Below the pieces are notes generated by a model that saw nothing but the letters and a program-made list of their open reading frames with translations, ran no database searches and was not told where the DNA came from. 64,000 nt of DNA, taken from Macrostomum lignano (Eukaryota). The position numbers and the translations under genes are program-made. The stretch spans positions 186,001 through 250,000 of the forward strand of contig NIVC01000995.1 in NCBI GenBank assembly GCA_002269645.1, in the 5' to 3' direction. This document shows, piece after piece, positions 27,858-64,000 of this stretch (the first letter of the stretch is position 1; every line of letters begins with the position of its first letter).

Positions 27858-28554
27858 TATGAATGAATATTTATCGATATTAATGGACACCAATGGGTAT
27901 TTTTGTAGACTCTGATTTGTAAACTGAGTTGAAGCGAGTGAGAAGACATCGTGAACTCTAAACTCTGGAGCATTGAACTCTCAGTGATCTGTATAGAGAG
28001 GCAGCACTTTAGCATGTCCCTGGTCTCTTGTCTCGAGTCAGTGGAATTCTGCCCCTGGGGCTCGCGGTAGCAGCAAAGCGAGTTAACCCCTCGGTTACTA
28101 GGAGAAGAAGATCGGATACGGAAGCTTCAATCCGCTCTTTGCTGGAGCAAATCACCGACCTGTACGCCTCATCTGTGCTCAAAAAAGTACACATTGAATG
28201 CTCTGGAATTTCCTCAAGTCAGCCAGTGCTCATGCGAGGGACAAAGCCTGTCCAGGCCTTCAAATCTGCATCTTATTAATACACCTGTGCTGGCCAATCT
28301 GCCTGCTGGCTCTCTCAGGGGACTGGAGTGGCCTCTGCAGCTGCCAGCACAGCAGATGAGAAGTCGAAATTACTTTGTAAGTAAACAGATTCACCTGACC
28401 GATTCAGGACCAATTTCCGAAGCGATTTTCTGAAACCAAATTGATTTCGTGAGGAAGTTCAGCGTCAAGGTACGGGTTGAATATGAAATAAATATGATGA
28501 ACATGACAGATACATGAATGAACATGATAAACATGATATAAACATGAATGAACA

Positions 28555-33656: not shown

Positions 33657-34964
33657 CGAGGGATACTCTAAAAGTTTTGCAATTCGACTATTTAAAGTTA
33701 ATTTTGCCAAACTTTTCTATTACAATCCTTCAAAGTAGGCTCCCCGGAACTGCAAACACTTGTGCGCTCGTCCGAGCCACTTGTTCATCAAGCCCTGGAA
33801 GTCTTCAATTGGGATGCCGTCAATCGCCTCCTTCGCCGCCTGCTCCAGCTCCTCGTCGGACTGAAACCTGCGCCCCCTAAGCGACTTTTTGATTTCTGGA
33901 AAGAGCCAGAAGTCGCAGGGGGCGAGGTCTGGTGAGTAGGCCGGGTGTGGTAGCGTTGAAATGCCCTCTTGGTCCAGGAACGCTCGAGTTGCAGCAGCCG
34001 TGTGGGCGGGGGCGTTGTCATGGTGAAGCTTCCGCCCTCGCATTCCCGTCCTTGGCGCCCTCTGGGTCACGCTGTCGATCACGACTGGCAAGCACTCTTC
34101 AGTGTACCATCGAGCAGTGACTGTAGCTTGACCCTCCAGCTTCACCATCGCCACCACGCCTTGTGAGTCGAAGAAGATGGCAAACATCCGCTTGCCCTGG
34201 GACCGGGACCGCCTTGCTTTCAGGGGTCGTTGACCACCTTCCGGCACCCACTCTGCACTGCTGCGCTTTGTCTCGACGTCAAAATGATACAGAAACGTCT
34301 CATCACCAGTGATGACCTCAGAGCGGCGCTGATGGCTCCCGTGCTCATATCGATTGATGAGAAACTGACAGAACTCCATGCGGGCCTGTTTTTGAGCATC
34401 TGTCAGGATGTGGGGTATCCATCGGGCACAAAGCTTCCTGACTCTCAGGTGATCGTGTAGAATCGTATCGACCGCTGCCGATCCAATGCCGACATTCATA
34501 GCTAGCATGTCCGTGGTGATTCGCGGATCCTGATGAATCAGCTCCTGCACTGCAGCGATGTTTTCCTCCGTCACTGCTGTCGGAGGTCTCCCGGGCCGGG
34601 GGTCGTCAGAAAAGCTGGTCCTGCCGGCCTGGAACTCGCGGTACCAGCGTGTAACCGTAGCATATGACGGCGCTTGAGCCCCCAATGTTGCTAGTAGCTC
34701 GGCATGAGTCTCAAGCGCCGTGAGCTTTCGCTTGTGGCAGTACCAAATTAGTAGCCGATTCTGCTCACGATTCAATTCCATGGCTGCAGCTGTACAGTTA
34801 AGGAGTCTCTGACTTTGACTGGGGGCTGAGCAGGCGTATATGTATGAATTCACTTGAAAATTGAGGTGGGGACTATGTACATGTTTATTGTACAGAGAGT
34901 TGGTTTTGAAGATTGTGCGACTTGCGCAAGTGGTTGAATTGCAAAACTTTTGGAGTATCCCTCG
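33657..34964 (-). mobile_element. Mariner (DD34D) transposon with an intact 353-aa transposase (33720-34781)
   Basis: ~31-bp TIRs CGAGGGATACTC(T/C)AAAAGTTTTGCAATTC with TA duplications at 33655-56 and 34965-66. The ORF is uninterrupted, with an HTH region, WIPHIL, GDETF, HDNAPAH and YSPDLAPCD. Confidence 0.97.
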
Positions 34965-35566: not shown

Positions 35567-38500
35567 CTAGGGTGACGAATCCGGAGACGAGAGGCCCAAC
35601 AAATTTGGTGAGGTTTCCACAACTGGCCGAATATCCTGCAGCTGGACAGCATCGCCTTCCGTACCTGCGACATTGGCGGCGACATTATTAGCAACGTCGG
35701 CAGCGACATTGGCGGCGACATCAGTAGCAACGTCGGCAGCGACATCATTGGCGACATCATTAGCAACGTCGGCAGCGACATCATTGGCGACATCATTAGC
35801 GACGTCGGCAGCGACATCATTAGCGACGTCGGCAGCGACATCATTAGCGACATCATTAGCGACGTCGGCAGCGACATTGGAACTATTTTCAGCGTCTCCC
35901 CGGTCGCTAACAGCAGCGACAACGTCGGCTGGCGGACCAGCAAATGTTGCCGGCAGTTGATGGGCCTGCGACAGAGGCGGGTAGTCGCGAAGGAATTCAG
36001 GAACGGAGGCGGCGGCAGCAAGCCGCTCCATATAAGGTAGCAGGTCGCGCAGCTCAGTGTCGGCCTGGTCGCCCACCCAGGTGTGCACCCGGATCTGCGG
36101 AGCAGACAGGGTCATGGTAATTCAAAGATGCAAACCATGAAGCCCAAATTTCAAAAATAATGAGATTTAGAACCTTAATTTTGACATATAATTCTAAAAC
36201 ATTTTAATCCGGATCTCAAATTATGATTAAATAAGGATCACAAGTCATCAAATTTAGAGCACCAATCAGCAAATGAAGGTAAAAAAAACAATAAATTCAG
36301 GTAACAATGATCAAGTCCAGGTCAGGACTCACCAAATTCAGCTCACAACTAATCAAATCCAGGTCACAAATCATCAAATCCAGGTCACAAATCATCAAAT
36401 CCAGGTCACAAATCATCAAATTCAGGTCACAAATCACCAAATCCAGGTCACATACCATTAAATCCAGGTCACAAATCATCAAATGCAAGTCACAATTAAA
36501 TAAATCCAGGTCACAAATAATCAAATCCAGGTCACAAATAATCAGATCCAGGTCAAAAATCATCAAACCCGGGTCACAAATCATCTAATCTAGATCAAAA
36601 TCATCAAATCCAGGTCACAAATCATTAAATCCGGGTCACAAATCATCAAATCCAGGTCACAAATCATCAGATCCAGGTCACAAATCATCAAATCCAGGTC
36701 ACAAATCATTAAATCCGGGTCACAAATCATCAAATCCAGGTCACAAATCATCAGATCCAGGTCACAAATCATCAAATCTAGGTCACAAATCATCAAATCC
36801 GGGTCACAAATAATCAAAATCAAGATTCTGAAACCTCGAAACCTAGGTCGAAATAAGATTATATAATGATTCTGAAATCCAGATAGCATCAGACCCGAAA
36901 ATTGAAAGAGATGAGAGCTTAAAGAACTACAGTTTTCTGTCTGTGAGCTTTCCAATCCAGATGACTGTAAATCAAGCCAGCCAAGGACACGAACCGCATT
37001 CTCCGTATTGAACATGTAGGACGCGGGCGAATTATCAATGATAACGCAGCGGTCAACCGGCCGGCCCAGCTGGGCCAGGTCCTTCACGAAATTGTCGCAG
37101 TGAAGGACGCAGGACTCGCGAAACAGGCGGTGCTTGAATGTGGACCACCGGTCCAGACGGTCCGACACGGGGTCTGCGTACTGCGGGTGAAAATATTACT
37201 GTTTAAAATGACACTCTGGGAGAACGCGATCGCCAGTGACCCCGGGTTCGATTCCGCGCGTGGGCCACATTAATTAGGGGCTTGAGCACTAATCAGCGGA
37301 CAAAGGTTCTATTGAGAGCTAACGGTGCAAGAAATACCTTAGCGAGGCTGGCGGTGAAGAGCACGCATTCGTACAGCTGGCCCATTCTTTCCAGGAATTC
37401 ATCCGCGTATGGCCGCTTCAACACGTACACCTGGTGCACCAGGCCTTCGATTTCAACGTCGATGACAAAGTCCGGCTCATCGACAAACTGTTAGAAAAAT
37501 TATATAGCGAGGTCGAGAGCTAATTTCAGGTGGAATATAAATGTTATTTTGAGGACCTGAAGGACGTTTGCCCAGCAACTGAGGATCTGGGAGGCTGGCC
37601 CAGCAACTGAGGATCTGGGAGGCTGGCCCAGCAACTGAGGATCTGGGAGGCTGACCCAGCAACTGAGGATCTGGGAGGCTGGCCCAGCAACTGACGATCT
37701 GGGAGGCTGGCTCAGCAACTGACGATCTGGGAGGTTGGCCCAGCAACTGAGGATCTGGGAGGCTGGCCCAGCAACTGAGGATCTGGGAGGCTGGCCCAGC
37801 AACTGACGATCTGGGAGGCTGGCTCAGCAACTGACGATCTGGGAGGTTGGCCCAGCAACTGAGGATCTGGGAGGCTGGCCCAGCAACTGAGGATCTGGGA
37901 GGCTGGCCCAGCAACTGACGATCTGGGAGGCTGGCTCAGCAACTGACGATCTGGGAGGTTGGCCCAGCAACTGAGGATCTGGGAGGCTGGCCCAGCAACT
38001 GACGATCTGGGAGGCTGGCTCAGCAACTGACGATCTGGGAGGTTGGCCCAGCAACTGAGGATCTGGGAGGCTGGCCCAGCAACTGACGATCTGGGAGGAT
38101 GGCTCAGCAACTGAGGATCTGGGAGGCTGGCCCAGCAACTGAGGATCTGGGAGGCTGGCCCAGCAACTGACGATCTGGGAGGTTGGCCCAGCAACTGAGG
38201 ATCTGGGAGGCTGGCCCAGCAACTGACGATCTGGGAGGATGGCTCAGCAACTGAGGATCTGGGAGGCTGGCCCAGCAACTGAGGATCTGGGAGGCTGGCC
38301 CAGCAACTGACGATCTGGGAGGCTGGCTCAGCAACTGACGATCTGGGAGGTTGGCCCAGCAACTGAGGATCTGGGAGGCTGGCCCAGCAACTGACGATCT
38401 GGGAGGCTGGCTCAGCAACTGACGATCTGGGAGGTTGGCCCAGCAACTGAGGATCTGGGAGGCTGGCCCAGCAACTGACGATCTGGGAGGATGGCTCAGC

Positions 38501-41500
38501 AACTGAGGATCTGGGAGGCTGGCCCAGCAACTGAGGATCTGGGAGGCTGGCCCAGCAACTGACGATCTGGGAGGTTGGCCCAGCAACTGAGGATCTGGGA
38601 GGCTGGCCCAGCAACTGACGATCTGGGAGGATGGCTCAGCAACTGAGGATCTGGGAGGCTGGCCCAGCAACTGAGGATCTGGGAGGCTGGCTCAGCAACT
38701 GACGATCTGGGAGGTTGGCCCAGCAACTGAGGATCTGGGAGGATGGCTCAGCAACTGAGGATCTAAGAGGCTGGCCCAGCAACTGAGGATCTGGGAGGCT
38801 GGCCCAGCAACTGAGAATCTGGGAGGCTGGCCCAGCAACTGAGGATCTGGGAGGCTGGCCCAGCAACTGAGAATCTGGGAGGCTGGCCCAGCAACTGAGG
38901 ATCTGGGAGGCTGGCCCAGCAACTGACGATCTGGGAGGATGTGGCTGAGCAACTGAGGATCTGGGAGGCTGGCTCAGCAACTGACGATCTGGGAGGCTGG
39001 CTCAGCAACTGACGATCTGGGAGGTTGGCCCAGCAACTGGGGATCTGGCAGGCTGGCCCAGCAACTGAGGATTTGGGAGGCTGGCCCAGCAACTGAGGAT
39101 CTGGGAGGATGTGGCTGAGCAACTGAGGATCTGGGAGGCTGGCCCAGCAACTGACGATCTGGGAGGATGTGGCTGAGCAACTGAGGATCTGGGAGGCTGG
39201 CCCAGCAACTGACGATCTGGGAGGCTGGCTCAGCAACTGACGATCTGGGAGGTTGGCCCAGCAACTGACGATCTGGGAGGCTGGCCCAGCAACTGACGAT
39301 TTGGGAGGTTGGCCCAGCAACTGGGGATCTGAGAAGCTGGCCCAGCAACTGAGGATCTGGGAGGCTGGCCCAGCAACTGAGGATCTGGTAGGTTGGCCCA
39401 GCAACTGAGGATCTGGGAGGCTGGCCCAGCAACTGACGATCTGGGAGGATGGCTCAGCAACTGAGGATCTGGGAGGCTGGCCCAGCAACTGAGGATCTGG
39501 GAGGCTGGTCCAGCAACTGAGGATCTGGGAGGCTGGCTCAGCAACTGAGGATCTGGGAGGCTGGGCCAGTGGAAACCTGGTAGCAAAGCCAATGCCCAAC
39601 CTTGAATGAGCTGTGCACCAGAGTTTCGTCCAAGTCAATAACAGCACAAATCTTATCGCCCAAGTCGGGATCTCGCGGTCCCAGCAGGTCGATAGAGAAT
39701 GTCTGGCCATTCTGCCCGTGATGGTGATGATGGTGATGGTTGTGGTGCTGCTGTTGCTGCTGCTGTTGTTGGCGCCTTCTAGTGGACGAGCGCCGATTAA
39801 AGCAGAAGCAGCAAAGCAGCTCTCGAAGCGGCCGAGGCTTTGACGGCTCGTTGACAGTAACGACATCAACTGTTGGCTCATCTGTGTCGGCTTTTTCTGC
39901 CGGGTCCTGCACAATCGGACTGATGACCTCATCCGAAGCTGCTGCAGTATCACCTGGTGGTAAGCAAATCATAAGTTTTGGTCATGTACCCTACCCGAAA
40001 CCCATTTCTGGATAGTTTTTTGAATTTTCAAGATTCAAACCAAAACGGAAGACTTAATTTTATGGAAAATATACGGGCACATAATGTTATGAGTAGATAA
40101 AATGGCATTGATTAGATAGAAAATGTGACAAGTTTGTTTTGTAAAAATTGTAAATTTAATGTAAAACACATGGCATTGTATTTGAATAGACTTACTACCA
40201 CTTGTCCTAGCCCCCTCTCAATCTTAGTGAAGTGCATAGTGCTTGGCTGACTCCAAGCATCTGCCAAGTGGTACAACACTTGGAATCGCAGGCAATCCTG
40301 TGCTGCCATCTCTTGCTACCCCCTGCTACATAGAACCTTCTTTATGCTCAACCAAAGGGATCTTAGAGTAGTCAGCATGGCTGACTTCATTTGCTATTAC
40401 TTCCTCCAAGGCCAGGTACCTAAGGAGTAATGCTTTTTTGTAATTCAGACAGTACAATGCTAAGCAACTTATTTGCCACTGCCCAATTTTCACCAGGACC
40501 AGGCTTACTCACTTTGGGCCAAATCTGGTTTTCTCCAATATTTGCAGGCCTAAAAGCATAAGTACTATTGCTTGCCTGGTACCTCAGGGACATGGGATGA
40601 TTTGAGTTCTTCCCTATCATTAGTGAGGAGGACCATACTAGAGGCAAGACCAGTGGGTCCCTTGAGCAACATCACATCACTTTAATGGGAGTCCTTGGTT
40701 TCCAGGGGCTAGCAGAATGGGCGATCTCCCTTGCAAAGAATCTGTTCAAATTACAGTTTAATTAACAAATTATGTTATCACATTTACATAATCATGTCTG
40801 GTGATGATAGACTGTTTGAGAGTCTAGCTGAGAATGACCAGAAGTTAAAGTTTCGTTAGTTTCCCATTATTTATGTTGGTCAGCAACATCAAAAAAATTC
40901 GCAATAATGTGTCCACAGTCACCTGGTGTCATCTGTTGAAGGAGCTAATGGTGTTGGGGCAATGATTGAATGCTTGAGAAACTAGTTGAGGATGCGTAGC
41001 AGTTCAGGTTTGCTTGCCCATTATTGAAGCTTGATAAGAAAAACCTGACATAGTTACAAAAGGATGTGGATGTCCATAGTCACCTGATGCCACCTGTTGA
41101 AGGTGCCGATAGTGTCAGGGTGATGACGGAATGCCCAGGAGACTAGCTGAGGGTGTCTGACAGTTAAGGCTTGAACACCGTTGAGGCTTAATTGGCAAAA
41201 CTAGAGAAATTTGTATCAGAGTGTTTATAGTCGTTGCCTAGTATCATCTGTTGAAGGTGCCGACGGCATTGGGATTATGACAGAATGTTCAAGAAACTAG
41301 CTGAGAATGTCTATCAGTTGAGGCTTGCCCATAATTGAAGCTTGATAAGAAAAATCTGACATATTTGCAACAGGATGTTCATAGTCATTTGGTGTCATCT
41401 GTTGAAGGTGCTGATGGCGTCAGGGTGATGACAGAATGCATGAGAGACTAGCTGAGGATGTCCAGCAGTTGAGGCTTGCCCATTGTCAAGGCTTGATCAG

Positions 41501-43669
41501 CAAAACTAGAGAAATTTGCAACAGCATGTTTATAGTCACCTGGTACCACCTGTTGAAGGTCCAGAAGTTCCACCTGGACAAAGGCTAATGACCAACGAAG
41601 TCAGAGCTGATGCAGACACATGTGGTCGACATGTTGATGAAATTTGGAGACTTGGCAAGGCTGCACTGAGGCACAGTGCTAATTGGTGCACAATGTGTAC
41701 TGAATACACTGGCGCTTATAGGAAAAATTGGACTTTCTGTCAGAATTGTTGAATATCTCGATGGTCCAGAGGGCTGGTGACTTGATTCTTGTTTGAGAAG
41801 GTGCGCAACAAAAGTTGGCCTGTGTTCTTGAATTTCACATGCCTGTGCTGCTCTGTTCTGGCATAGCAAAAAAATTGTCAGGGGGGAAATCCCCCTTCTT
41901 GGTAGTTTGATGGGTGGAAAAATGGCTTGGCATTCTTAGTATTAATGAAAATCTTAAACTTCTGTTAATGGCAAAAGTGATATTTACTAATAAGCATTAA
42001 TCTGTTAATTGTAACAAAAATATAGGAAATTTACACTTTTTCCAAAACAGGTTTCATGATGCACTCACTGTCTTTGCTTTTCTATCTTTTTAGCCAATAT
42101 AGAAAGGTCATCTAAGCAAAGCAATTTATGTACTAAAGTAGCAAAAAATAAATAAAAACTTGTATTTAAAATACTACTAAAAGTAAATAAGAAACAAGCA
42201 AAAAGTATTATTTACTTAAAACTTGAGTCATTTAATTAATAAAAAAATAAACATAAAAGTTGTTTCAAAGTACTATATAGTGCTAGGCCTATACTATAAA
42301 AGTATTATAGGTAAGGTATATAAGTATAAGTATATAGGTTGTATTATAGTAGGCATATTAGAAAGTTTTGTAAGATTAGAAAAGAAGTAAATCAAAGTAA
42401 TGCTCATGTGCAAGCAATAAAATTAATAATTTTTAATTTATTATTTAAAGTTTATAAATAACTAATCTAATTAATTATTTAATCCGGGAGGCTGCGCCCC
42501 CGGCCCAGACAAGGTCCCCATTGAGGCGCTGCAAGTCACAAGGGTTGCCACTGAGGTGGCCCACGTGATGAACGGCATCCTAGCAGGAGGCCCCGCACCC
42601 AGCAAGTGGATGGAGGCCAACATCGTTGCATCACGAAGAAGCTGGGCACTACACGGAAGGAGGAGCATTGTGGAATCTCGCTCATGTCCTGTACCACGAA
42701 GCTGTTCAACCGGGTGCTATTAGCACAGTTACAGCCAATGCTAGACTCACTCCTGCGGTACAAGCAGAACAGGTTCCGCCCCTGTCGCAATACGGTGATG
42801 CAGATCTTGGCCCTCTGCTGCATCATCGAGGAGGCACACATCCACCAGTCAAGCCTTATTGTCATCTTTGTTGACTTCCTCAAGGCCTTTGACTTAGTGG
42901 CGCGCGGTGCACTGCCTCACATGCTCCGTGCCTACAATGTGCCGCAGCAGCTGATCTCCGCCATCATGGCACTGTATCAGGACACCACCGCCGCAGTAGC
43001 AGTCAGCAGCACCTGTGGCTGGCCGGACATGTCATCTGGGCCAAAGCCTACTGCCCAGAGCCATTGCAGGACGTCCTGCTGTGGGCCCCACAGGGACCGC
43101 GTAGGCGTGGCCAGGGATGATCAGCCCACTACATCAACAGCCTTTTTGAAGATGCGCGAGCACCCAGCCAGGCGGCCAGTGTGAAGCACATTAGAGACCT
43201 AGCTCTGAAATGCCCGATTTGATGCTTCCACCTTTTGGCCACTTCTGTGGCTGGCATGGGGCGTAACTAATATTGTTATTATAATTAATTAAATTAAGAT
43301 TTTGTTTTATTTGCATTATTATTAGAGATATTGTATTTAATAAATTTAATATTATTTGTTTCTGTTTATAACATTTTATTATTGCACCAATAATTTATAT
43401 TAGTTAATTTACTTATATATTATTTTCTAAAAAATAGACCTATCAAAGGGTCTGTTATTAGTATAAATAATGCCAAATAATATAAAGCTCTAAGATTTCT
43501 TACCTTGGCCATGAATAGGCCTATTATTTGAATGTTCCATATTTGACGCATCATTATTTGAAGACACTTTATTTTCAGGATTTGATTTTACTTCTAAATT
43601 AGGCCTCTCAACATCAGTTGAAACAAAGTCAGGGTCATTTACTTGTGTTATAATTGAAGAAATATCCAT
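35567..43669 (-). CDS. CTDSPL: CTD small phosphatase (SCP/CTDSP family HAD phosphatase), ~460 aa
   Basis: Exons 43504-43669, 39601-39953, 37338-37487, 36995-37180 and 35567-36094, with phases 1,0,0,0. Motifs include the N-terminal [17 protein letters not shown], catalytic [56 protein letters not shown] and DTELRDLLP. Confidence 0.93.
36310..36810. repeat. 21-bp minisatellite AAATCATCAAATCCAGGTCAC (intron 4)
   Basis: Seen directly. Confidence 0.93.
37570..39565. repeat. 28-bp minisatellite CCCAGCAACTGAGGATCTGGGAGGCTGG, ~70 copies (intron 2)
   Basis: Seen directly. Occupies ~95% of the intron. Confidence 0.97.
40900..41620. repeat. Old degenerate tandem repeat, ~150-bp unit, ~5 copies
   Basis: ATAGTCAC..CA(T/C)CTGTTGAAGGTG..ACTAGCTGAG..GGCTTG recurs at ~150-160 bp spacing. 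Confidence 0.7.
42480..43200 (+). mobile_element. RTE-like LINE reverse transcriptase fragment (decayed)
   Basis: [18 protein letters not shown](N)RFRPCR.T..QILAL..IIEE..IFVDF.KAFD.V.R..L...L.AY.VP matches non-LTR RT domains 0-3. Confidence 0.85.
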
Positions 43670-44419
43670 GATATGATAGTTGATGCCGTTGATGGCACTA
43701 GTTGTAGTTGAATAAATATATGATCCCACTTTTTCTTAAAAATTAGTATTAGTAACTAGGCCTGACAAAAAGCAGAAGCTGTCAAAAAGTAAATTAAATA
43801 GCCAAGATGTCAATCTTTTTATTCACTTTTTTAGTATATATAGGCTATACAGGCCTATTAAGCCTGGTTGGTAGTTATATAAATCTTTAATCTAGCTTGG
43901 TTTTTGTAACTACAAAACCATGCTGCCTGAAATAAAATTAATATGTATACATTGTTTGAGCCAAATTAGACACAATAGTACTCTGGTCAGTGAGCAGTGC
44001 CAAAAATATTCGACCCTTGACCATTGACCACGATTGTGTTTTTATGTAAAACTTTTGCGAAAACGGTGTTCGCTTTTTCAACCCATTAACCTAAATACAA
44101 TGGCTTATGCACAGATTTTACAAAGAAAGAACCGCACAAGGCGTTTTATAACAGTGCTAGTAATCCGTAGATTAAAGCTCCCGTCGAGTATGCGCGCTTA
44201 AATTAATATAATTTAATAGTCAGATTGAATCGAGACGCAATTTATAAGAAGCGAGGAACTTAAATATGTCGTCTAAAATCATTGCTATATTGTCAATTTA
44301 CTGCAGTTTTTATGTTTGCTATAAGTTGATAAATGTTACTCAGAATGTTTTAATACTAATACTATCATGGTATTTTTGTTTTTTGTTGTCCTTTCAGTTC
44401 TTCCGTATATATTTTGTCA

Positions 44420-46500
44420 TTATATATTAGGACGCAGAGGGTAGACCCCTGGCCCACTTGGCAGTGCGCGGGCCTGGCCGCAGCGCAGTTGCTCAGTCGG
44501 CCGGTGCAGCAAGAGCGCAGCAGCGATCAGTAAAGCGCATCCAGCGCTCGCTCTCGCGGCTCGGTCAGCGGCACAGTCTCCATGCCGTAAAGGAGGATCG
44601 GCTCTACGGCCGTGCGGAATAGGCGCACCTTCGGGTCGTCTCTGGCCAGCTGGATTGAGACGTTCCTGAGGAGGTGCGTGGCGCGCCAGGGCGCTGAGGT
44701 AACGGAATGAAGTCCTCGCACGCCGCGATGCCGTCTCCATTGGGCAGCGTGAGAGTTGTGGTGGTATTTGAGATTTGTGAGTGCAGCGCCTCCGTCTTGC
44801 AAGATTCACCAGCAGCCCAGCAAGGGTGCCCTCGCGCAGGCCTTGTGAGAGCGCGCTGGGCGGCAGCTAAATCGCGGCAGAGCAGCAGCGCGATTCGTCA
44901 TAATACGCGAGAGCGGGCAGCAAAACAGGAACTCAAGGGCGCCTGAGCTGTGCTGAACTTTCTGTGGGACCATCGCTCGACATGACAAATTAGGCCCTGG
45001 AGTCAGGCCTGGACACCGAGTCAAACGCCTGCGGGAGTCGACAAAGAGGATTGCCACGGAGGGCTGGCGCGTCTTGTGCAGGCCTCGATGACAAAGAGGA
45101 TGGTGGCATTCAATCTAGAATCTATAGCGGAAGCCGCTTGCAATTTGGAGGCTCAGCAGCAGCGGGCTGAGGCCGGGCAGGAGGCTGTTGCGCAGAATTG
45201 CGTTCAGCAGCTTCGGAGTTGTGCATTCTAGCGCGATGCCCCGCTGGTTGTCCAGATTTCCAGGACGCCTTTCTTCGGGATAGAGACAATCTTGGAGGTG
45301 CGCCATTGCCGAGGAGTTGATCAAACGGTCTCGTTGCCTCCAAAGCTGCACTGCTTTTCAGCGGGCTGGTGATTATTGTGGTGATCTCGGGCAGCTTCAG
45401 GTGCGCTGCAGCTCGTCTCTGGCAGCACTGGCCTGGTCGCTGTCGTGGCCGTGGAGTGCAGCAGTGCTCTGCATTTCCCGCTTTGCCAGGGAGATGATGA
45501 GATCGCTGTCCCACAGGGCCTTTGGATGGTTTGCCTGCCTCCGTTGGAGAAGCACTGCAGAATCATCAACGGCGTGATGGAGAGACTCGAAGGACCCGGC
45601 AGGAGCAGGAGTGGCGGCAAGCAGCTAGCTTGCGTAGGAAGGCCTGCCGCGTGTCCGGGTTTCTCAAGTCTGCCCAGAGCGGGTGAGGTGGCGCAGGCCG
45701 GAGCTTTTGCCAGAACAGATTGAAGTCACTTGCCACCAGGCAGTGATCAGATTGAACTCAGTCGGGGCGGATGTTGAGGAGGACTCTGCGCACCTTGGAC
45801 CTCAGTGCACTTGGGCAGAGAATCCAGTCCAGCCAAGTGGTTCGCCCGTAAAGGGGCCAAAGAGAGTTGGAAACTTTCTGAGGCGCTATCGCATGGAGCC
45901 ATTGACAGCCATCAGATATCTATGGCCTGGATAAAACTGGTTGGAGAGATGATCGAGTTGGCATTGGGGATGCCACAGCTGTTTTCACCTGGCGGTCGTA
46001 GGCTGGCAATAGCGAGATGAAATCACCAGCAACAATGACAGAGTCCCGAGCAGGGATGGAATCAAGCATGCACCCCAGAGTGTCGTAAATGGCTTCTGTC
46101 TCAGATGGATCTTCGCTGGTCCGGGGGGCCTTTGGAGCATATAGACGCGCAGATGATGTGAATCCGCCTGTCTTCCCCGGCAATAGAGGCGTGTCCCAGG
46201 CGCTCGGATGGGAACTTGATGTCCTGCAGCGCTCTGAATGCGGCAGAGCAGGATGCCTCCAGTTCCCTGAGGAGTGGCTGGGGATCCGAGTTGGGTGGGA
46301 GCACTGGCCCCAGAGGCTCCGGCAGGCCGCAAGTCCTGATGGGTTCGATGAGCATTGGCGTGGACCTCCTTGCGCCGCACATTAAAGGGCTGCCGACGGC
46401 GCTTGGAGTCCTGACTCCATCGTCCCCTGTGAGTCGCCTCTGTGAGTTGTCTCGATAAAACATTCAATTCGATCCTGTAAGTAAGCCGAATCAATTGTGA
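44420..46500 (-). mobile_element. Decayed RTE-like LINE: endonuclease, RT N-terminal and C-terminal fragments
   Basis: YAP..E..YDTL...LDSIP..D.VIVAGDF (APE domain, ~46000-46150), NQRGIALECTTPKLLNAILRN (RT, ~45200) and KVRLFRTAVEPILLYGMET (C-terminus, ~44600), broken by multiple frameshifts. Confidence 0.8.
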
Positions 46501-46972
46501 GTACGAGTAGCACCATTCAGCTCGTGGTTCTGTGGTGCATAGCAATGGGCATCGAAATGATCGAGGAGGGTGATTACGCTACAGCATAAATTTATTTACC
46601 TGACATCCACTAGACGCTAATAAACGATACGAGCGCGCGTAATAAAAAGTCGCTGCAAAGCCTCTGTCCTCTCATGTTCCCATGTAAATTTATCCTGTTC
46701 AGAGTACAAATCAAGTTTCATTTTTGTAAGATTTCTTAACCTGGTTTTAATTTTACGACTCAACTCATAATTCTTGCTTAATTTGGGAATTTTCATCTAT
46801 TTTTCCTACCCAAACGTTAAAAGTTACCATAGAGATGGCGAAGAGGATCGCTCGAAATGAGTAAAGCTGACTTGAAAATTGTTTTGTCTGTCCTTTTGTT
46901 TCAATCAGCTTAGCATTGGTGATTAGCAATATGAATTCCATATGATATCTGTCTCAGTTTCAAAAGCAAAAT

Positions 46973-47891: not shown

Positions 47892-49824
47892 TCAGTTGTC
47901 ATGGCGCTTCATCCCAAGCCAGCCGTAGGTGTGCTGGCAGCGCACACACAGCATATTCAGGTGCGGTTGCAACACGTATTTGGCGATAACCAACGAGACG
48001 CAGGTTAGGAGCAGGCTCATCTGCATCTGCGCGTCCATAGTTACCTCGATGTCACCCGTGATGTTGGCGATGGCAGAGGAACAGTCGGGCCACAGCAAGC
48101 TGCGGTCAGTGGACATGGTGCAGAACAATGTCGCGGCTTCGTTGCGGCCGAAGCTCTGGCAGCACTCAGCCGGTGGCAGCACCTTGGCTTCTTCTGAGCT
48201 AGAAAAGTCGCTGAAGCAGCAGGGCAAGTTCTGGTAGGCGTGAAGACTCCAGAATGAGGAAGTTCCCTGGCTGAGCATCAGCGAGCGACTAACTTCAGTT
48301 GATATCAGCGCCTGGTGGTTTTCCTGTTCGAATGGAAACAAATTTGGAGAGAAAATATGCGGAATTTGTCAATCAGATGCTACCTACCTTCTGAATGCGA
48401 AATCTATCTAAGCGGTGCACGCTGGATAATGATAATAAAATATCAATGATAGCTATTACCAGAAGACAAAGTTAATTTTATTACCTCGATCTCGCCTCGC
48501 AAAAAGCGAATATTTCGCAGCATAGATAGGATAAGATTGTAGGGTATGGACACTGTCAACAGGACAATGAAGAATACGCAGTACCGCTTGCGTCTCTCTA
48601 ACTGTTTTCTAACGGTGGCTAGGTACCTGCCTTTAATTGGCAGCATCAGGTAGAAGCACGTGACGGTGCACACCAGATTCAGGAAGGAGGCGACAACGTT
48701 GAGCGAGCAAAATAGAAAATAATGCCACGGCGGTTTGAAGTGCTTCATATCGATACCCTTGAAGTTGAACAGAGTGTACAGAGCCGGTATCACAGTGCAG
48801 TAGATGTTCGCCATGTAGCTGATATAGTAGCACGAGTAGTATATGATGCATGGCAGCTGGAAGGCGACGCCGTTGAGGAATAGAACGCCAGCCATTTTTC
48901 GATGGGAATTGACGAATTGAAAGGACTCAAGCAACTGCTGATAGGTGCCGAACCGCCTGATTGACTCTGTTGTTGTTGGTGCGGTTGCATCTGCAGGCGT
49001 TACTTTTACACCTGGCTACCTTGAGTCATGCATGATGCTGCACTAAGGCAGAGCCCAGTGACAGGGACCAGTGGTAGTTTTCTCATGAAATCCACCCAGC
49101 TTTCACGCGTAGCTTAAAGTTAAACTTGAAAAATGTAATGTAGATTAAAAAGCAACCACAATGACTGAGGAATAGAGGGTTAAGGTTGGGAAGATTATTT
49201 GACAAAGAATAAATTTAAGCGACTTATGTCTCGACTTTCTAAGAAGTTTCTTAGCTCATCTGCACTTGTCTCTGTCTACTCAGTTTTCTCTTTCTCTCTC
49301 TCTCTCTCGTTTAATCTTTTTATTTTCTTATCTCTCTCCCTCGCTGCCTTCTGATTGGCTCTTTAATCTCGTATCTTTCCTTAGTCGCGCACTTCGCCCC
49401 TCCTTTTCTTTCTTCCCCTACCCCCGCCCCCTATTTTACCGTCCTATAAATACACTTATTTGGGTCCTGAGCCCCACTTACTGTCTGTTTTCATTGTTTT
49501 GGTTTTAACTCTCAAGTAGTAGTCTATCTAATTTTTTCTAAATGGCGCCCGAACAGAAACTCGAACCCTGGACCTTCAGATTAAAAGTCTGATTCTCTAC
49601 CGACCAAGCTACACGTATTTGAGGAAAATAATATAGACTACGACTAATAAAGCCATAAGAACTTACCAGGTACCAGAACCTATCGAATTGAAGTATAACT
49701 TGGTTGGTAAATGCTCCCATATTTTTTTATCAAGTCGATTCTTACCTAACGGAGTCTCGGGTCGTTCCTGCTGCTTGGGCAAGTGGAATACCGTCTGCTG
49801 GTCGGGCAGAGCCACAGTTGACAT
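47892..49824 (-). CDS. Divergent tetraspanin-like 4TM protein, ~338 aa
   Basis: Exons 49746-49824, 48485-48990 and 47892-48323 (phases 1,0; strong AG|GTAAGA donor). Three TM segments are followed by a large loop (QNLPCCF..PPAECCQ..FC..PDC) and a fourth TM, paralleling the CCG / PxSCC / GC pattern. Confidence 0.65.
49543..49618 (-). pseudogene. tRNA-Lys(TTT) pseudogene with encoded 3' CCA
   Basis: TAGCTTGGTCGGTAGAGAATCAGACTTTTAATCTGAAGGTCCAGGGTTCGAGTTTCTGTTCGGGCG-CCA is near-identical to eukaryotic tRNA-Lys(UUU). The 5' acceptor arm is non-matching, the T stem has mismatches, and there is no T-run terminator. Confidence 0.8.
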
Positions 49825-50542
49825 TCTGTCGCGTAAGTTTGCGTCGTCAAAATCAGAAAACAGCTTAATTTTTTGTGATTATAACGGGTCGTAGAAAATG
49901 AGACTTCTTCATTGTACCATGACTACGTGGCTATCGGGCGGGCTGATATTCGATTATTGCCATAGACGATTTCATTTTGACCCGAAAAGTCGGGCCTATA
50001 ATGGATTATTTTCATTTCATGTATTTCAACCAAATAAACAAAAAACAAACAAATCAAACAAAGCAGTCAGAGTCCAGAGCCAAACTCAACTTTTGCAAAG
50101 CGTCCTTTTCGCATTCACATATAAACGTAACATTTAGCCCCGTTTTTCTCCAAGACGATCGTCGGGCCGGATTTATCAGGCTGGCCAATAATTGTGACGG
50201 CAGTTGGAACGCTAGATGACTGTTCGCACAAAGCAACTGACTCTTGTGCTTGATGAATGACCACACTCGACGTAGAGGCATGTAGACTATCTGTGATAGC
50301 AGAAGACAATGCTCGCTTCTGGACCACCGTTGTCCGCTTTGTATAACAAATCAATGTAGTTCAGCATGGTCGATCTTGAATGTGACGGCAGCAGTCTCGC
50401 TTCTTTCTCTTTGCTTCTTTATTCTTTCTCTTATAATTGAACTGTTTGAATCTCTAAGTTTGTATGCTTGTCCATAACGCTCTAGAGATTGCAATTCTTG
50501 ACCGATTTTCATCGCATTTTCGCCAAAATATTCAAAATAATA

Positions 50543-52426
50543 CACCAATATTACCTCCTATTTTGAACAAAGTCTTGTTCAAAAGAAACAAGCAGAACTT
50601 CCATTCAAACATTTAAAGAAATATCAGCCCTTGCGGAAATTCAATTCAAACAAAGTCCCTTTCTATTGAAACGGAAGAACTTCAATTCAGACTGTCTGTG
50701 GCCAAAGTTGTCCCTGAGTGACGCGCATGCGCAGATTTGAAATTCAAAAGAAAGTCACATTCTGTTTCGACAGTGATTTTTGCACATACATTTAGATACG
50801 AGTACATTTTTAGTACATTAATCTAACTTTTTTTTCCTGTACTGCATAACTGTACAATCGTTGCGCAATAAGAAACGATATGAATCCTGAAGATAAGATT
50901 GAAGAAGACGATGAATTGCTGGAAGAAGATGGAATCGATGAATTTGAAGCAGAGTTCGATGAAGATATCATGGAACAGCAGCCTCGGCAGTGCGCTATTG
51001 TTTAAGCAACAGTGACAGAGACCGTATCATCAGGGCTGCTGATCGTGGGGATTACTTTGTGAAACTGGCGCGCCAACTTGGAGTCAAGAGGTCAACAGCG
51101 TACACGATTGAGGTCAGGGAGAGCGGAAAAGATTCCGGACCTACGAGATTCCGGACTCCATTCAGGTCAAGCGGCTTCCACCATACAGTTCATTTTTCAG
51201 TCCTGTGGAAGGCCGCTCTCCTGTTGGAAGGCCGCTCTGAAGAGAGAACTGGCAATTGATGGTTAGGTGTCTCAAGTTGGCCAACTGACACTGTCTTGTT
51301 CCTGTTTTTCATTTTACTCTTATGTCCGTCGATATGCTGTGTTTTATCCCTTTGTCGAAATAGAATGTGACTTTGTGTAACAATCGACCCTTTGCTTCGG
51401 TCCTAACGATTTGCCTGAAAATGAACCTAAAACGTGCCGTTACTTGGTAGGGTTGCTGCCACCTTGGTGTGCGGACTCGACGCGTCGGCAGAGTTGTCTA
51501 TCCGTCACCTGAAAGAAAATTAACAAAGTCGCTCGGAGCAAAGGCAAATCTGAAAAATGTCTCGACAGTCGATCGTCTTAGTTGAATGCTGCTCGAACCT
51601 GTAACCTGTAAAACCTGAAATGAGAGAGGAGAGCTCAGAGGCAGAGGCTACACGAGTTAGCCACAATGCTCCGCGAGACGACGCAGTCTGGAGAAAAATG
51701 GCTCGCAGATGCTCCGTATTTATAGCCGAGCTGACCCCCAAAAGTCACGTGAGTTTCATGCGGTGAGCGCGTGAAACTTCCTTATTTGGGCATTGGAATC
51801 ATGCGAACGACGCGTGATCCAAGGCCAACTTCCAAATAAGGCAACCTTGTCACGCAGCAGTGGCGTGACTCAAGGTCAGTGGTCACGCACAGAGTGCGTG
51901 CACAGTCACGTGCTTAGTCTGTGCTAAAAATAGAATCGTGGGCGGATGAGTCATCCTGTTTACTCCCTCTAGGCAGCCCTTACACTCCGCGCAGGTGATG
52001 AGTCATCCTGCTACGCCTCCTCAGCGCGAGTGGGAAGACATTGAGTGTGGCTGCCCGCGCCCGCTCAGGCGATGAGTCATTGGGCAGTAAACACTTAGGC
52101 CCAGCACAGGGTAACTCTCTCACTAGCTCAGGTGGACTGAGATACTGTGCAGCGGATCACAGCACCCTTAAGGAAAGCTAGTGAATGCTGCTGAATAGCC
52201 AGATAGCAGCCAGTCACTACATTTGTTTATTTTGAATTTCAAATCTGCGCATGCGCGTCACTCGACAATTTTGGCCAAGTCTGAATTGAAGTTCTTCCGT
52301 TTCAATAGAAAGGGACTTTGATTGATTTGAATTTCCGCAAGGGCTGTTATTTCTTTAAATTTTTGAATGGAAGTTCTGCTCGTTTCTTTTGAACAAGACT
52401 TGTTCAAAATAGGACGTAAAATGCTG
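50543..52426 (+). mobile_element. Non-autonomous Tc1/IS630-superfamily element with ~200-bp TIRs
   Basis: Imperfect inverted repeats at 50543-50749 and 52230-52426, flanked by TA. The internal remnant from 50880 has an acidic leader and, after a frameshift, an HTH-like DRIIRAADRGDYFVKLARQLGVKRSTAYTI. No DDE domain is present. Confidence 0.75.
51717..52079 (-). promoter_or_regulatory. Putative Pol II promoter with an immediate-early motif cluster
   Basis: TATAAATA (minus, 51717-24), E-box TCACGTGA 51745-52, CArG boxes 51780-89 and 51832-41, MEF2 site CTAAAAATAG 51924-33, and AP-1 TGA(C/G)TCA at 51866, 51947, 51999 and 52073. Confidence 0.55.
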
Positions 52427-52625
52427 TATACTATTATTTTCACTTTGGAGCTTCTGTCTGCCATAGGCAAGCATCTCTACACGCAAAATATGCTCGTAGT
52501 TGCTTGACCATCTTTGCAACTCTTTCGACTTCTAAATATTCATTTCCACCAATCGCAGTACGTTAAGTTAAGACAATGAAACGCATCAACTTACATGGAA
52601 TTAATTCATTTTGTAATTAGAGGCA

Positions 52626-52983
52626 GGGGGGTTGTGTGCACCCTGGCGCACTTTAAGCGACATTGTCACACAGCCGGCGAGAGGCATTACTGCCCATTCC
52701 GCCGACTTCCCTGAGCAGGCACACAAGCGCGCGCGGATACGTACGCAGTCATACGCACAGGCACACACTCACACAGGAGTGCACAGCGGTCCTAACTTTA
52801 TTTATCGTTAGGCATGTACACTTCACTGTGCCTTGGGGGTTGGCCCTCAAGGCCTTTAATTGCACGAGCAGAGCCAAGCCGAGATTCCAATTCAGCCCTA
52901 AATTAATGTTGACTGCACTGGGAATCGAGCCCGGGCCGCTGGCACATCAGAGCGCCACGCTAGACAGCTGGGCTACGGACCCC
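52626..52983 (-). mobile_element. tRNA-derived SINE (family B), ~360 bp
   Basis: The minus-strand head has A-box- and B-box-like motifs (GGGGTCCGTAGCCCAG..GGGCTCGATTCCC). A highly similar copy lies at 61577-61931. Confidence 0.8.
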
Positions 52984-53307: not shown

Positions 53308-56300
53308 TTAACACCACTGCAGCAAAGCCAGTAGTGAGCACAGGCAGGCCACAATAGAATGGAGTTTAGAGATGCTGTGCAGGTTCAAATTCGTTGAACT
53401 GAGCGCAAACTGGTGTCTCTGCTGATGGCGCTGTCTCTTCTTCGGAAGTTCTGAAATAATTTGATGCAATTAGTGCAAGTTTACTTAAAACTCCATTTTT
53501 CGGTGAGGTTATTAACGCCAAAGATAAGTTTGCAGAGTCTTAAACATTTTATTAGAGTAGTTAACCTCCGAATATTCTGTCTCCAAATCTCCGAAAGCTT
53601 CAGCACCGGGGGCATGAAGCTCAACTTTAAGCTCTGGACCAATCCACAGATAAATAGAATACCGAGCGAGATGTGTCACTCACAATTGAAATTATGAAAA
53701 GTAAGTCTTTAATTCATTTCTTTTTAAATTGGTAAAACAGGGCAGAGATGTTAATTTAATGGGTCTGCTTGTAGAAAGGCAAAGACGATTTTTGCAGCTT
53801 CAAGAACTAAATATCTAGTCAAACTACATCAATTTTAATATCACTATTATAAAGGGTAGATAAGTGCATTTTTGTGAGTGACCCACGAGCGTTCATCTCC
53901 TTATTCTACGACGTAATTTATTGCTTTTGTCAGCCTAACGGAATAAAGCCACCGAAACCATCGATCTTGATGAAAAGCCACCGAAACCATAGATCTTGAT
54001 GAAAAGCCACCGAAACCATAGATCTTGATGAAAAGCCACCGAAACCATAGATCTTGATGAAAAGCCACCGAAACCATAGATCTTGATGAAAAGCCACCGA
54101 AACCATAGATCTTGATCAAAAGCCACCGAAACCATAGATCTTGATGAAAAGCCACCGAAACCATAGATCTTGATGAAAAGCCACCGAAACCATAGATCTT
54201 GATGAAAAGCCACCGAAACCATCGATCTTGATGAAAAGCCACCGAAACCATAGATCTTGATCAAAAGCCACCGAAACCATAGATCTTGATGAAAAGCCAC
54301 CGAAACCATAGATCTTGATGAAAAGCCACCGAAACCATAGATCTTGATGAAAAGCCACCGAAACCATCGATCTTGATGAAAAGCCACCGAAACCATAGAT
54401 CTTGATGAAAAGCCACCGAAACCATAGATCTTGATGAAAAGCCACCGAAACCATAGATCTTGATGAAAAGCCACCGAAACCATAGATCTTGATGAAAAGC
54501 CACCGAAACCATAGATCTTGATGAAAAGCCACCGAAACCATAGATCTTGATGAAAAGCCACCGAAACCATAGATCTTGATGAAAAGCCACCGAAACCATA
54601 GATCTTGATGAAAAGCCACCGAAACCATAGATCTTGATGAAAAGCCACCGAAACCATCGATCTTGATGAAAAGCCACCGAAACCATCGATCTTGATGAAA
54701 AGCCACCGAAACCATAGATCTTGATGAAAAGCCACCGAAACCATAGATCTTGATGAAAAGCCACCCAAACTGAGTAGAATTGATCGGTTAATACGTCGGT
54801 GTACTTTATTTATTCCTAACCTAGGATAATTAATTTTATGAATGTAATATTCTGCAACTTCTACTGTCAATAAAGTATCAAGAGAATGGTAATGTGGCGC
54901 AAACTGTTTTTTGCATTATTCTGCAAACTGCATTAAAAAGCCTACTTCTGACCATCTGAATTTTCCAATACTTATATGCACATTTGGTGCGCGCTTATTC
55001 GGAAAAATTGGTTTAGAAGTGTGCCGATTTTAATTAAGAAAATTCCACTACATGTATTGGAGAAAAACAGTTACTAGTGGCAACTGGCAAGTGATATGCG
55101 GTTTCTAGTTTATTAATAATAAACATATTAATAATAACTTCAGAAGGGCTGCGTGCACCTAACGCCAACGGCAACATATTCGGAAAGTACAGATAGTTGC
55201 GGGAAATGCCGATGTTGAATATGCGCAGAAATCTAGCTCGCATCAAATGCTCAATATTCTCTGATCTTTGGTGCTATGCCACGAAATTTACCACCAACCT
55301 GTGACGGTGAGCCAATGCACCGCTGCCGCAGGCGGCTCCATCAAGCAGCAGGCCCAGTCTCCCGCGTGCTCTATCCCTACAGCGGCGATGGTAAGCACGC
55401 TGGTGAGAGTGCGGCCCCCATCGACGCTCCAGCTCTCGGAGATGTCAACCCCGGCCTGGTGCCGAGCGTCGGCGCCGCGATGTCGCCAGAACAGAGTTTT
55501 GCCGCTGCCTGATTGCGCTACAGCCGCTGTGCAGGTAAATGACAGGTGCTGATCGCCAATTTCAGCTGACGAGGGGCCGCTGATGTTGATGGAGACTGGA
55601 ATCGATGCAGTTAAGAGATCTGTTGAAATCGAAGCTGGTTTACTTACTACTGGATAGATTGCTAAAGGGGTGCATTGGGCTCAGTTGGGTCAGATTCGGC
55701 CTTCTTGCATCAACAAAAGCCCATCATTGTGAGCAGTCATCAGTCATACACCTGATGCATCTCTCCACATTCAAAAGTTTTACTTACCTTCAATTTTTTG
55801 TTGGGAGTCTCTCGCAACTTCAGAACTCTCTTTTCCGCTGATCTCTGAAGAGGTTTGGAATTCGGATGTTATATGGGACTTTGGTTCGGTTCTGGCAGTT
55901 TATAAATTCTCAAAAACACAAAGAGTTCGACAGCCCACCAGTGACTAAAAGTGCAAACTCGGCGACCAACGGCCTGGCGCCGCCGCCGCTCACGTGGCAC
56001 AGGTATCTACCCGAGTCTCTGGGCTGGGCTCGCTGAATCAACAGGCGCCATTCGTCCTCTGCCATGTCGGCGTCAATCGACACGCGTCTATCGGGGGTGA
56101 AAACGGACCGGCCGACCGTCAGAGGGATGTCCACGCCATCGTTCTTCATCCAGGTGACCTGCGGAGCGACAGTCATACGACACAGAGTGAGCTGTGCATG
56201 TTTCTGACTGCAACCAGAGTGAGCTGTGTTTTCAATTAGCTGCCATTGGAATTTGAGCAATTGCGGCAATATTTCTCACCATTCTGCCGCCAAGGTTTCG

Positions 56301-61576: not shown

Positions 61577-61931
61577 AGGGGGCCGTGTGCACCCTGGTGC
61601 ACTTGAAGCGACATTGTCACACAGCCGGCGAGAGGCATTACTGCCCATTCCGCCGACTCCCCTGAGCAGGCACACAAGCGCGCGGATACGTACGGTCATC
61701 GCACAGGCACACACTCACACAGGAGTGTACAGCGGTCCTAATTTTATTTATCGTTAGGCATGTACACTTCACTGTGCCTTGGGGGTTGGCCTTCAAGCTG
61801 GGCGTTAATTGCACAAGCAGAGCCAAGCCGAGATTCCAATTTAGCCCCAAATCAATGTTGACTGCACTTGGAATCGAGTCTGGGCCGCTGGCACACCAGA
61901 GCGCCGCACCAGACCACTGGGCGACGGCCCC
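61577..61931 (-). mobile_element. tRNA-derived SINE (family B)
   Basis: Near-duplicate of 52626-52983. Confidence 0.8.
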
Positions 61932-62216: not shown

Positions 62217-62365
62217 TCACAGAGAAACGCTGACTTCTGCAGCTCCCCCAGCTGTCAGCGAGTTGCTGACGTCAGCAATTTGATCCGGGCAGGTGCGCAA
62301 TTGGCGAAGCTCTCCGCTTTGAACCTCAACTGCTCGGCGATGCTGCAGGAGCTGTCGCTGTCTGA

Positions 62366-62406
<41 letters not shown>

Positions 62407-63566
62407 GTTGTCGCTGAAACCGCCGGCCGATGGTGACGCCGCCGGCAGCGCAGCAGGCGCAGGAAGGCGCGCCGGAAGTCTCGCATCGAGTGAGCGTAGA
62501 TCACTGGGTTTACGGCGCTGTTGCAGTAGCCCAGCCAGGTCACCACGGCCAGAAGAGATTTCTCATGCGGGCCGAGGCTCAGGCTGAGCGCCAGCAGCGA
62601 GCTGCAGACGAAGAACGGCAGCCAGCAGGCGATGAAGACGCCCATCACAATGCCCAGAGTCTTGGCGGCGCGTCGTTCGCGGGAGAATCTGGCGAACTGC
62701 TTGCGCCGGGTTGCCGAGCCGCCACCGCCGCCGCCGCGGTGATGTTCTACCGCTCCGGCATCGTCTGCAGCGTCGTCGGCGACCTCCTCAGCCAATCCGC
62801 GACCGCCGCCGCCCCGGTGAATTCGAAGCACAACGGTTGCTTGCTCGCCGTGTCCGCGCAGGACTTTGGCGCCGTCGCGCCAGCTGCGGACCAGACGCGC
62901 GGCGGTACGGTAGATTTTGCAATAGACAAACACCATGACTAACAGGGGCGCATAGAAAGACACCAGGGAGGAGCAGATGAGGTAGGCCGGGTCGCTGGTG
63001 AAGCTGCACACGCCGGGCAAGCGGCTGGTCGGGCTGGTGACTCGCCACCAAGCGATGGCGGGGAAGCTGATGAGGCTGGAGCAAAGCCACACGGCTGCGA
63101 TCATTGCCACGCAGCGGCGCTTGGTAACGCGGCTGGGATAGCGCATCGGGTTGCGCACGGCCCAGTAGCGCTCCAGCGCGATCATGCACAGGTTGAGGAT
63201 GCTGGCCGTAGAGCTCAGCACGTCGAATGCGTGCCAAAGATCGCACCAGGTCGGTCCGAACAGCCAGCGCTCGCGGGTGGCCTGGGCGATGGCCGCGAAT
63301 GGCATCACGACTGCGCCCATGAGCAGGTCGGCGGTTGCTAGGGAAACTATTAAGTAGTTAGTAACGGTCCTGAGACAGGGCTCGCTGAGCACTGCCAGCA
63401 TCACTAGGCCGTTGCCTAGCACTGTGCCGCAGGCTAGCAGTGCGAGCAGGCAGCCAATCAGGGCGTCCTCCGGCTGAACTTCTAGCAGTCCGTAAGCGGC
63501 GCTGCTGGCGTTTTCAACTCCGACGCTTGAGTTCATGGGAGCCTCCTGTATCGCTTGGCTCATCAT
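62217..63566 (-). CDS. Dop1R2: Invertebrate-type D1-like dopamine receptor (Dop1R2/INDR-like), intronless class A GPCR, ~449 aa
   Basis: GNGLV, LATADLL..VVMPF, WCDLW..FDVLSSTASILNLC..ALERYWA, WLCSSLISFPAIAWWR, SSLVSFY.PL.VM.FVYCKIYR.A, LRIHRGG, ERRAAKTLGIVMGVF..CWLPFF and LGYCNSAVNPVIY closely follow Dop1R2 as I recall it. The start codon choice (63566, 63563 or 63536) is uncertain. Confidence 0.9.
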
Positions 63567-64000
63567 AACTTGAAGCTTTTCAGTTTTTGTATCGTCCTTG
63601 TAAGAATATTTTCTGGCCCAGAAGCGAGGCCCAAATGTTATAGTGACGGAGAAAGCGCTCTCAGCCAATCAGGATCTGCCTGCTGGGGGGATTTCTGTCC
63701 CATTGTGGCTTCAGCTTGTTCTTTGCTGCAGATTTTTGACGTTCCTTTTCTACCAAGTTGGGTTTGATTTTTTGGTAAATATTTTGTTAATTCTGGGAAT
63801 CAGAAATGTTCAGGGAATGGGACGGACGCGGGGTTGTCTGTGTAGAAATTGCCATGTTTAGAATCTGGACAAATAAACAGGCACGAAATGCACTGTGGCC
63901 AGCGATAGACCAGAGCCAGAGGGGATAAATTGGAGGACAGTGACTGCAGGAATTTGTTTAAATGGTCCATCTTAAATCGTACCGCAACAAGTTACTAATC

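Follow-up and report, generated by a model that had tools for sequence, protein, structure and literature searches.

The 64,000-nt stretch of the Macrostomum lignano genome considered here (the window; all coordinates are window positions) contains, on its minus strand at 47892-49824, a gene for a multi-pass membrane protein of 330 amino acids and, upstream of it at 50543-52426, an internally deleted Tc1/mariner-like DNA transposon, recognized by its terminal inverted repeats (TIRs), a TA target duplication and a transposase remnant. The transposon, read on the plus strand, hosts a block of 846 bp (51376-52221, minus strand), which interrupts the right TIR and has the same orientation as the gene. 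Between 51660 and 52100 the block displays a TATA box accompanied by AP-1, MEF2, E-box and SRF/Ets-type motifs, and an initial annotation of the window had proposed that the transposon captured or delivered a wound-responsive promoter that may drive the gene. The structure of the locus reveals instead a nested insertion, and the block is probably a solo long terminal repeat (LTR) of an M. lignano LTR retrotransposon, its assignment to an LTR family being drawn from its anatomy.

The host transposon is bounded by the TA duplication at 50541-50542 and 52427-52428. Its left TIR is uninterrupted, spans 230 nt on the plus strand (50543-50772, inverted repeats I1-I4) and includes three 20-nt direct repeats with a spacing of 41 bp, at 50592, 50633 and 50674. 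The outer part of the right TIR (52222-52426, minus strand, I1-I3) is 91% identical to the left one over 206 nt by blastn; the inner part, severed by the block, is found on the same strand at 51353-51375 and corresponds to a repeat of 22 nt (I4), 95% complementary to 50751-50772. The transposase remnant (50880-51240, plus strand) is both frameshifted and deleted, and retains an acidic N-terminus, a helix-turn-helix (HTH) and a C-terminal piece with an LPPYS..PVE motif; a LPPYSSFFSPVE motif was recognized in it by eye, and the catalytic core is deleted. Its similarity to HTH_SB is weak (E=0.0066, below the Pfam cutoff), as is its match to a protein containing HTH_SB and DDE_3. An exhaustive HMMER search with the 98-residue remnant returned weak matches only, in part spurious immunoglobulin (Ig) proteins and one Tc1-like transposase, and no match was obtained in a comparison with 5.8 billion proteins. 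The TA duplication, the 230-nt TIRs and the three 20-nt direct repeats resemble those of Tc1/mariner elements of the inverted repeat-direct repeat (IR-DR) type, namely Sleeping Beauty and its relatives, and so does the combination of a putative paired-type HTH remnant with the LPPYS..PVE motif of the DDE domain; differently from Sleeping Beauty, the element is internally deleted and frameshifted, and its TIR sequence is unrelated. The TIR element and the placement of the motif cluster inside it, antisense to the transposase remnant, are as the initial annotation had described them.

Other observations were made on the transposon and its immediate surroundings. A 19-bp tandem duplication, TCCTGTTGGAAGGCCGCTC, is present in 2.1 copies at 51201-51238, at the LPPYS..PVE motif of the remnant. 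When the transposon is excised in silico, the minus-strand segments 52470-52429 and 50542-50351 are joined and two short open reading frames (ORFs) become one of ~75-85 amino acids (MADRSSKVKIIVYYFEYFGENAMKIGQELQ...), with no significant Pfam match; this may be due to chance, or it may represent a small exon or ORF broken by the transposon. Just upstream of the element lies a copy (52627-52982) of a dispersed repeat of ~355 bp, which is found again at 61578-61931 with 91% identity and, as weaker partial copies, at 5046-5136 and 8590-8709.

The inserted block, read on the minus strand, extends from 5'-TGTAGTGAC to CGATTGTTACA-3'; it starts with TGTAGTG and finishes with GTTACA, and thus possesses TG...CA ends that form a 4-nt terminal inverted repeat, TGTA/TACA. 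At the junctions it is flanked by a target-site duplication, CAAA in the minus-strand reading, with the upstream copy at 52222-52225 and the downstream copy at 51372-51375. In the left arm of the transposon the segments 50716-50753 and 50751-50772 are contiguous, whereas their right-arm partners, 52226-52263 and 51353-51374, lie 851 bp apart; if 51376-52221 and one CAAA are taken out, the two arms can be aligned up to the inner end, ...AAAGTCACATTCT(G/A)TTTCGACA. A compositional break is also evident, with a G+C content of 0.52 in the block versus 0.36-0.42 in the flanks. The block is a nested insertion into an older transposon: it integrated there, either at this locus or in an ancestral copy, and was not captured between the transposon ends.

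No retroelement internal sequence and no primer-binding site were found next to the block, and both flanks consist of Tc1-like TIR sequence; the block is considered a solo LTR because its 3' flank is TIR sequence devoid of these elements. Inside it no coding potential was found. The U3 would correspond to approximately 52221-51700 and the R/U5 to approximately 51699-51376, with the TATA box located ~59% into the block and the initiator ~500 nt from its start. LTR retrotransposons account for 21% of the M. lignano genome (PMC5730564), and 409 LTR families have been described in this species, some of whose LTRs are known to bear promoter elements responsive to stress and to be present close to genes in the solo state (PMC12801592); for these reasons the prior for a solo LTR at this position is high. 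The kind of event is ordinary. LTRs rich in transcription factor sites are familiar, as are nested insertions and the presence of solo LTRs in the vicinity of genes, and LTR promoters that respond to stress were recently demonstrated in M. lignano itself (PMC12801592).

Some results weigh against this identification. A blastn search with a word size of 9 revealed no second copy of the block in the window, as the block, the transposon body and the TIR matched only the arms of the element itself. The 16 six-frame ORFs of the block gave no match at E<=10 among the 5.8 billion proteins. There is no canonical AATAAA in the block downstream of its TATA box, where the TATAAA contained in the box could possibly act as poly(A) signal if R were short. 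Finally, the A-rich junction permits an alternative duplication, AAA, with ends other than TG...CA. The initial annotation had envisaged that a common solo LTR would redirect its explanation: the solo-LTR anatomy is indeed present, and a further copy is missing from the window. The metagenome contigs of the Joint Genome Institute (JGI) likewise contain no exact match to 25- and 29-mers taken from the block and the TIR.

Two other identities of the block were considered and discarded. One is a small-RNA gene promoter, which was rejected given that no known RNA family from Rfam is detected in 50400-52600 and no spliced leader (SL) RNA gene in the window. The other is a truncated element in which TGGCAGCAACCC, at ~51466, would be the primer-binding site; it was rejected because the target duplication brackets all 846 bp.

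The motif cluster is contained in 363 bp, which hold TATAAATA, two CArG boxes, two CACGTG, one MEF2 site and four AP-1 heptamers. The TATAAATA sequence, the TATA box of the block, was located by motif scan on the minus strand at 51717-51724 and is followed by an initiator-like CCATTTT (51696-51702, minus strand; YYANWYY), so that transcription is predicted to start at the A at ~51699, 25 nt past the first T of the TATA box. The motif scan also placed one E-box CACGTG at 51746-51751, inside GTCACGTGAG, and a second one at 51907-51912. Upstream of the TATA box, by about 60 and 110 nt, are the two CArG boxes, CCTTATTTGG at 51780-51789 and CCAAATAAGG at 51832-51841, which belong to the plus-strand Ets/CArG composites ACTTCCTTATTTGG (51776-51789) and ACTTCCAAATAAGG (51828-51841); both have the extended form ACTTCC-W6-GG, in which the Ets core GGAAGT of the other strand overlaps the CArG box, and the composite at 51828-51841 is one arm of an inverted repeat (I10). 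The MEF2 consensus CTAAAAATAG is found at 51924-51933. As for AP-1, a TGACTCA heptamer is present at 51866-51872, and three TGAGTCA heptamers reside in repeated units: GATGAGTCATCCTG at 51945-51958 (heptamer at 51947-51953; direct repeat D14), a second exact GATGAGTCATCCTG at 51997-52010 (51999-52005; repeats D14 and D4) and GATGAGTCAT at 52071-52080 (52073-52079; D4). The two exact units are 52 bp apart, the same spacing that separates the two Ets/CArG composites. Every motif proposed by the initial annotation was recovered in place, and the layout of an SRF/Ets, AP-1, MEF2 and TATA promoter is borne out by motifs and spacing; only the number of palindromic E-boxes changes, since it had counted one. 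No heat-shock elements (HSEs) were found in the block by motif scan.

The clustering of these motifs is exceptional and far beyond chance. The four core motifs produce 9 matches in 440 bp, while the highest count was 5 among 150 first-order Markov simulations of the 64-kb window and 4 among 5000 simulated blocks of the same composition as the block, figures to be read with the caveat that the motif set was picked after the sequence had been inspected. The 14-nt Ets/CArG pattern occurs twice in the window, where 0.03 occurrences are expected. Two of the AP-1 sites are not independent, because both sit in the exact 14-nt direct repeat GATGAGTCATCCTG. Across the whole window TGASTCA is at chance level (13 observed versus 13.7 expected), as is CCW6GG (5 versus 2.8).

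In the sequence of events that we propose, an LTR retrotransposon would have integrated in the inner right TIR of the older, internally deleted Tc1/mariner-like element, duplicating CAAA, and LTR-LTR recombination would later have deleted its internal part, leaving one LTR. The motif cluster would be the U3 enhancer-promoter of the retrotransposon itself, with three GATGAGTCAT AP-1 units and one more AP-1 site, MEF2, the two Ets/CArG composites and the two CACGTG, followed by TATAAATA and the initiator at ~51699; the last ~320 nt of the block would represent R/U5. This interpretation of the cluster is supported by its being made in part of direct repeats, as U3 enhancers often are. Such a promoter would tie transcription of the element to widely expressed, signal-responsive host factors, namely SRF with an Ets partner, Jun/Fos and MEF2, and the solo copy may initiate minus-strand read-through transcripts or serve as an enhancer. 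Binding of these factors, activity of the promoter and any effect on the gene are predicted from the motifs.

The membrane-protein gene consists of three exons on the minus strand (49824-49746, 48966-48485 and 48323-47892). Its product is 99% identical to an M. lignano protein of 330 amino acids in UniRef (P0001, N-terminus MSTVALPDQQ...), and this match places the start codon at 49824 and also defines how the exons are joined. Four segments of the protein are hydrophobic, and one loop contains 6 Cys, among them two CC pairs. The tetraspanin label given to it by the initial annotation was not confirmed: Pfam returned no family even at E<=10, PF00335 (tetraspanin) included, the CCG motif is absent, and any likeness to tetraspanins would be confined to topology. 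The PDB offered no related structure, and the UniRef name of P0001 rests only on a G-protein-coupled receptor (GPCR) profile. A TTATAAT sequence on the minus strand at 49878-49884, ~58 nt upstream of the ATG, could be the proximal core promoter from which the gene is transcribed, and a minus-strand AATAAA lies between the block and the gene at 50418-50423. The first intron also contains a tRNA-like sequence (49546-49618, minus strand), which scores 32.5 bits with the Rfam tRNA model, just over threshold, is not called as a tRNA by ARAGORN, and is bracketed by a 21-nt inverted repeat (49515-49535 and 49625-49645); it could represent either a pseudogene or a repeat of tRNA origin.

The origin of the block as a solo LTR has to be compared with other possibilities. 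In the model of the initial annotation, the Tc1-like transposon would have taken up a wound-responsive promoter from the host and brought it to this locus, where it would drive the gene through a cis-spliced non-coding leader with its donor at 51463-51610. The position of the block between the TIRs and its orientation agree with this scheme, and AG|GT pairs do exist at 51616-51590, ~51510 and ~51463; however, the TG...CA ends of the block, the 4-bp duplication and the split TIR point to integration into the transposon. Moreover, the splice donor consensus of M. lignano is GT[G/A]AG (PMC8629364) and the proposed donors, bare GT dinucleotides, do not fit it, nor is there any GTRAG donor on the minus strand between ~51699 and 49824, so that this model appears very improbable. 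Slightly less remote, and still improbable, is that the block derives from the 5' region of a host gene, i.e. a promoter with a first non-coding exon, for instance of an SRF/AP-1-regulated gene, copied by a non-LTR route such as break-repair filler DNA. Its architecture does resemble that of a cellular immediate-early or muscle-type promoter, and neither the blastn search of the window nor the six-frame ORF search disclosed a second copy; conversely, the combination of exact TG...CA ends and a target duplication is improbable by chance, roughly 1/256 per feature at fixed junctions, and the block lacks a coding exon and is not homologous to any protein. That the motifs simply co-occur by chance in non-functional DNA can practically be dismissed: the window-wide totals of AP-1 and CArG sites and the choice of motifs after inspection would be in keeping with it, but the simulations and the repeated 14-nt Ets/CArG composite are not.

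A distinct question is whether the block drives the gene. The predicted start at ~51699 is 1,875 nt from the ATG and the two are co-oriented, in agreement with the initial annotation, which saw the module as aimed at this gene; the cluster lies ~1.9 kb upstream of the start codon. The annotation also reported the CAG|A-ATG, which is present at 49827-49822, and deduced from it the need for an upstream exon or leader. Such a CAG next to the start codon says little about a missing exon, because the TATAAT 58 nt upstream could give a short unspliced leader. In M. lignano, 39% of the genes undergo SL trans-splicing (PMC5730564), and if the acceptor is real the SL is therefore its obvious partner. 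The trans-splice acceptor motif of the species is [T/C]TNCAG (PMC8629364), and the acceptor of the gene, CGACAG|A, fits it partially, as CAG matches and T does not. It is most likely that the gene uses its own proximal promoter or SL trans-splicing, independently of the block. We regard as unlikely the alternative that the LTR-type block is an alternative promoter or enhancer of the gene, with transcripts starting at ~51699, reading through the transposon remnant and then maturing at the CAG|A acceptor at 49826, where trans-splicing of the SL, with a 1.9-kb outron discarded, would be more plausible than cis-splicing. This alternative is compatible with the solo-LTR identity and differs from it in function only. 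It is favored by the orientation and distance of the block, given that ~2 kb suffices for tissue-specific promoters in M. lignano (PMC5730564), by the acceptor-like CAG immediately before the ATG together with the frequency of trans-splicing, and by the integrity of all nine motifs; an SL on the mRNA would be compatible with transcription from the block, because trans-splicing discards the outron and hides the true start. Against it, the AATAAA at 50423 and 29 upstream ATGs intervene, CGACAG departs from the trans-splice motif, no instance of which occurs in 50560-49800, and the gene has a TATAAT of its own. In addition, the SL ends in ATG, and its splicing onto A-ATG would put this ATG out of frame with the ORF.

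Several other features are present in the window. At 55910-56269 (minus strand) is an exon for an immunoglobulin I-set domain, whose gene is upstream of the block and of the membrane-protein gene and co-oriented with both, and at 62217-63668 (minus strand) a GPCR of the rhodopsin family (7tm_1, E=1.5e-73), which is encoded by one exon and has a poly-Q tail. Just downstream of the membrane-protein gene, ORFs similar to the reverse transcriptases of long interspersed nuclear elements (LINEs) are found on both strands at 42606-46545 (e.g. 42606-43184), a region of degraded non-LTR retrotransposon sequence. At 33720-34853 on the minus strand there is a mariner-type transposase ORF that seems intact (HTH_48, DDE_3, Transposase_1), with a partial second copy at 27223-27915 on the plus strand; neither belongs to the family of the Tc1-like host transposon. 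Arrays of simple or tandem repeats, all very long and with ORFs of hundreds to 1769 amino acids, occupy 100-1600, 15764-21073, 22634-23891 and 37712-39953, in line with the report that tandem repeats make up roughly 15% of the M. lignano genome. A further array at 53945-54770 is composed of 28.5 copies of a 29-bp unit with 98% matches and yields long artificial minus-strand ORFs, and a second marginal tRNA match is found at 8345-8414.

Vertebrate immediate-early genes such as c-fos and egr-1 are controlled by a CArG box with an adjacent Ets site, bound by ternary complex factors (TCF), by AP-1 and cAMP response element (CRE) sites, and by a TATA box. The block is similar to their serum response elements (SREs): it has two CC(A/T)6GG, both overlapping a GGAAGT, several TGAGTCA farther upstream, and a TATA box that follows the CArG boxes at 60-110 nt. 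This similarity concerns motifs only, and the block is not homologous in sequence to those promoters. LTRs that respond to stress or signals are known in other organisms, such as Tnt1 of tobacco, induced by wounding and elicitors, and ONSEN of Arabidopsis, induced by heat, while in mammals the AP-1-rich LTR10 and THE1/MaLR serve as enhancers or alternative promoters. The U3 of these LTRs, like the presumed U3 of the block, has clustered and often repeated transcription factor sites, and solo copies of those elements can be co-opted as promoters or enhancers by neighboring genes; the block differs from them in being found in a flatworm. ONSEN is also cited in a study on M. lignano, where Ty3/Mdg4 retrotransposons (Mlig-id115|Mag and others) have LTR promoters bearing HSEs, and solo LTRs are located within 2 kb of host genes (PMC12801592). 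These LTRs are from the same species as the block and have, like its presumed U3, canonical host stress or signal sites upstream of the TATA box. In contrast, the block has no HSE and contains SRF/Ets, AP-1, MEF2 and CACGTG-type sites. A full-text literature search retrieved no paper on AP-1 or SRF-type LTRs in flatworms.

At present the locus represents one nested transposable element insertion upstream of an orphan membrane-protein gene, a common situation in a genome that is 21% LTR retrotransposon. A bolder hypothesis, suggested by the motifs and held to be rather improbable, is that an LTR family of M. lignano evolved an immediate-early promoter of the SRF/Ets, AP-1 and MEF2 type, switched on by wounding or mitogens, and that its solo LTRs scatter wound-inducible promoters near host genes, the membrane-protein gene among them. 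If this were true, the family would be the wound-responsive counterpart of the LTRs with HSEs, and the pathway borrowed would be one central to wound response and regeneration. Should the family be active or recently active, it would constitute, after heat shock (PMC12801592), the second case of a host signalling pathway exploited by M. lignano retrotransposons, and the block would provide a compact candidate inducible promoter, of ~500 bp, for transgenesis in this animal.

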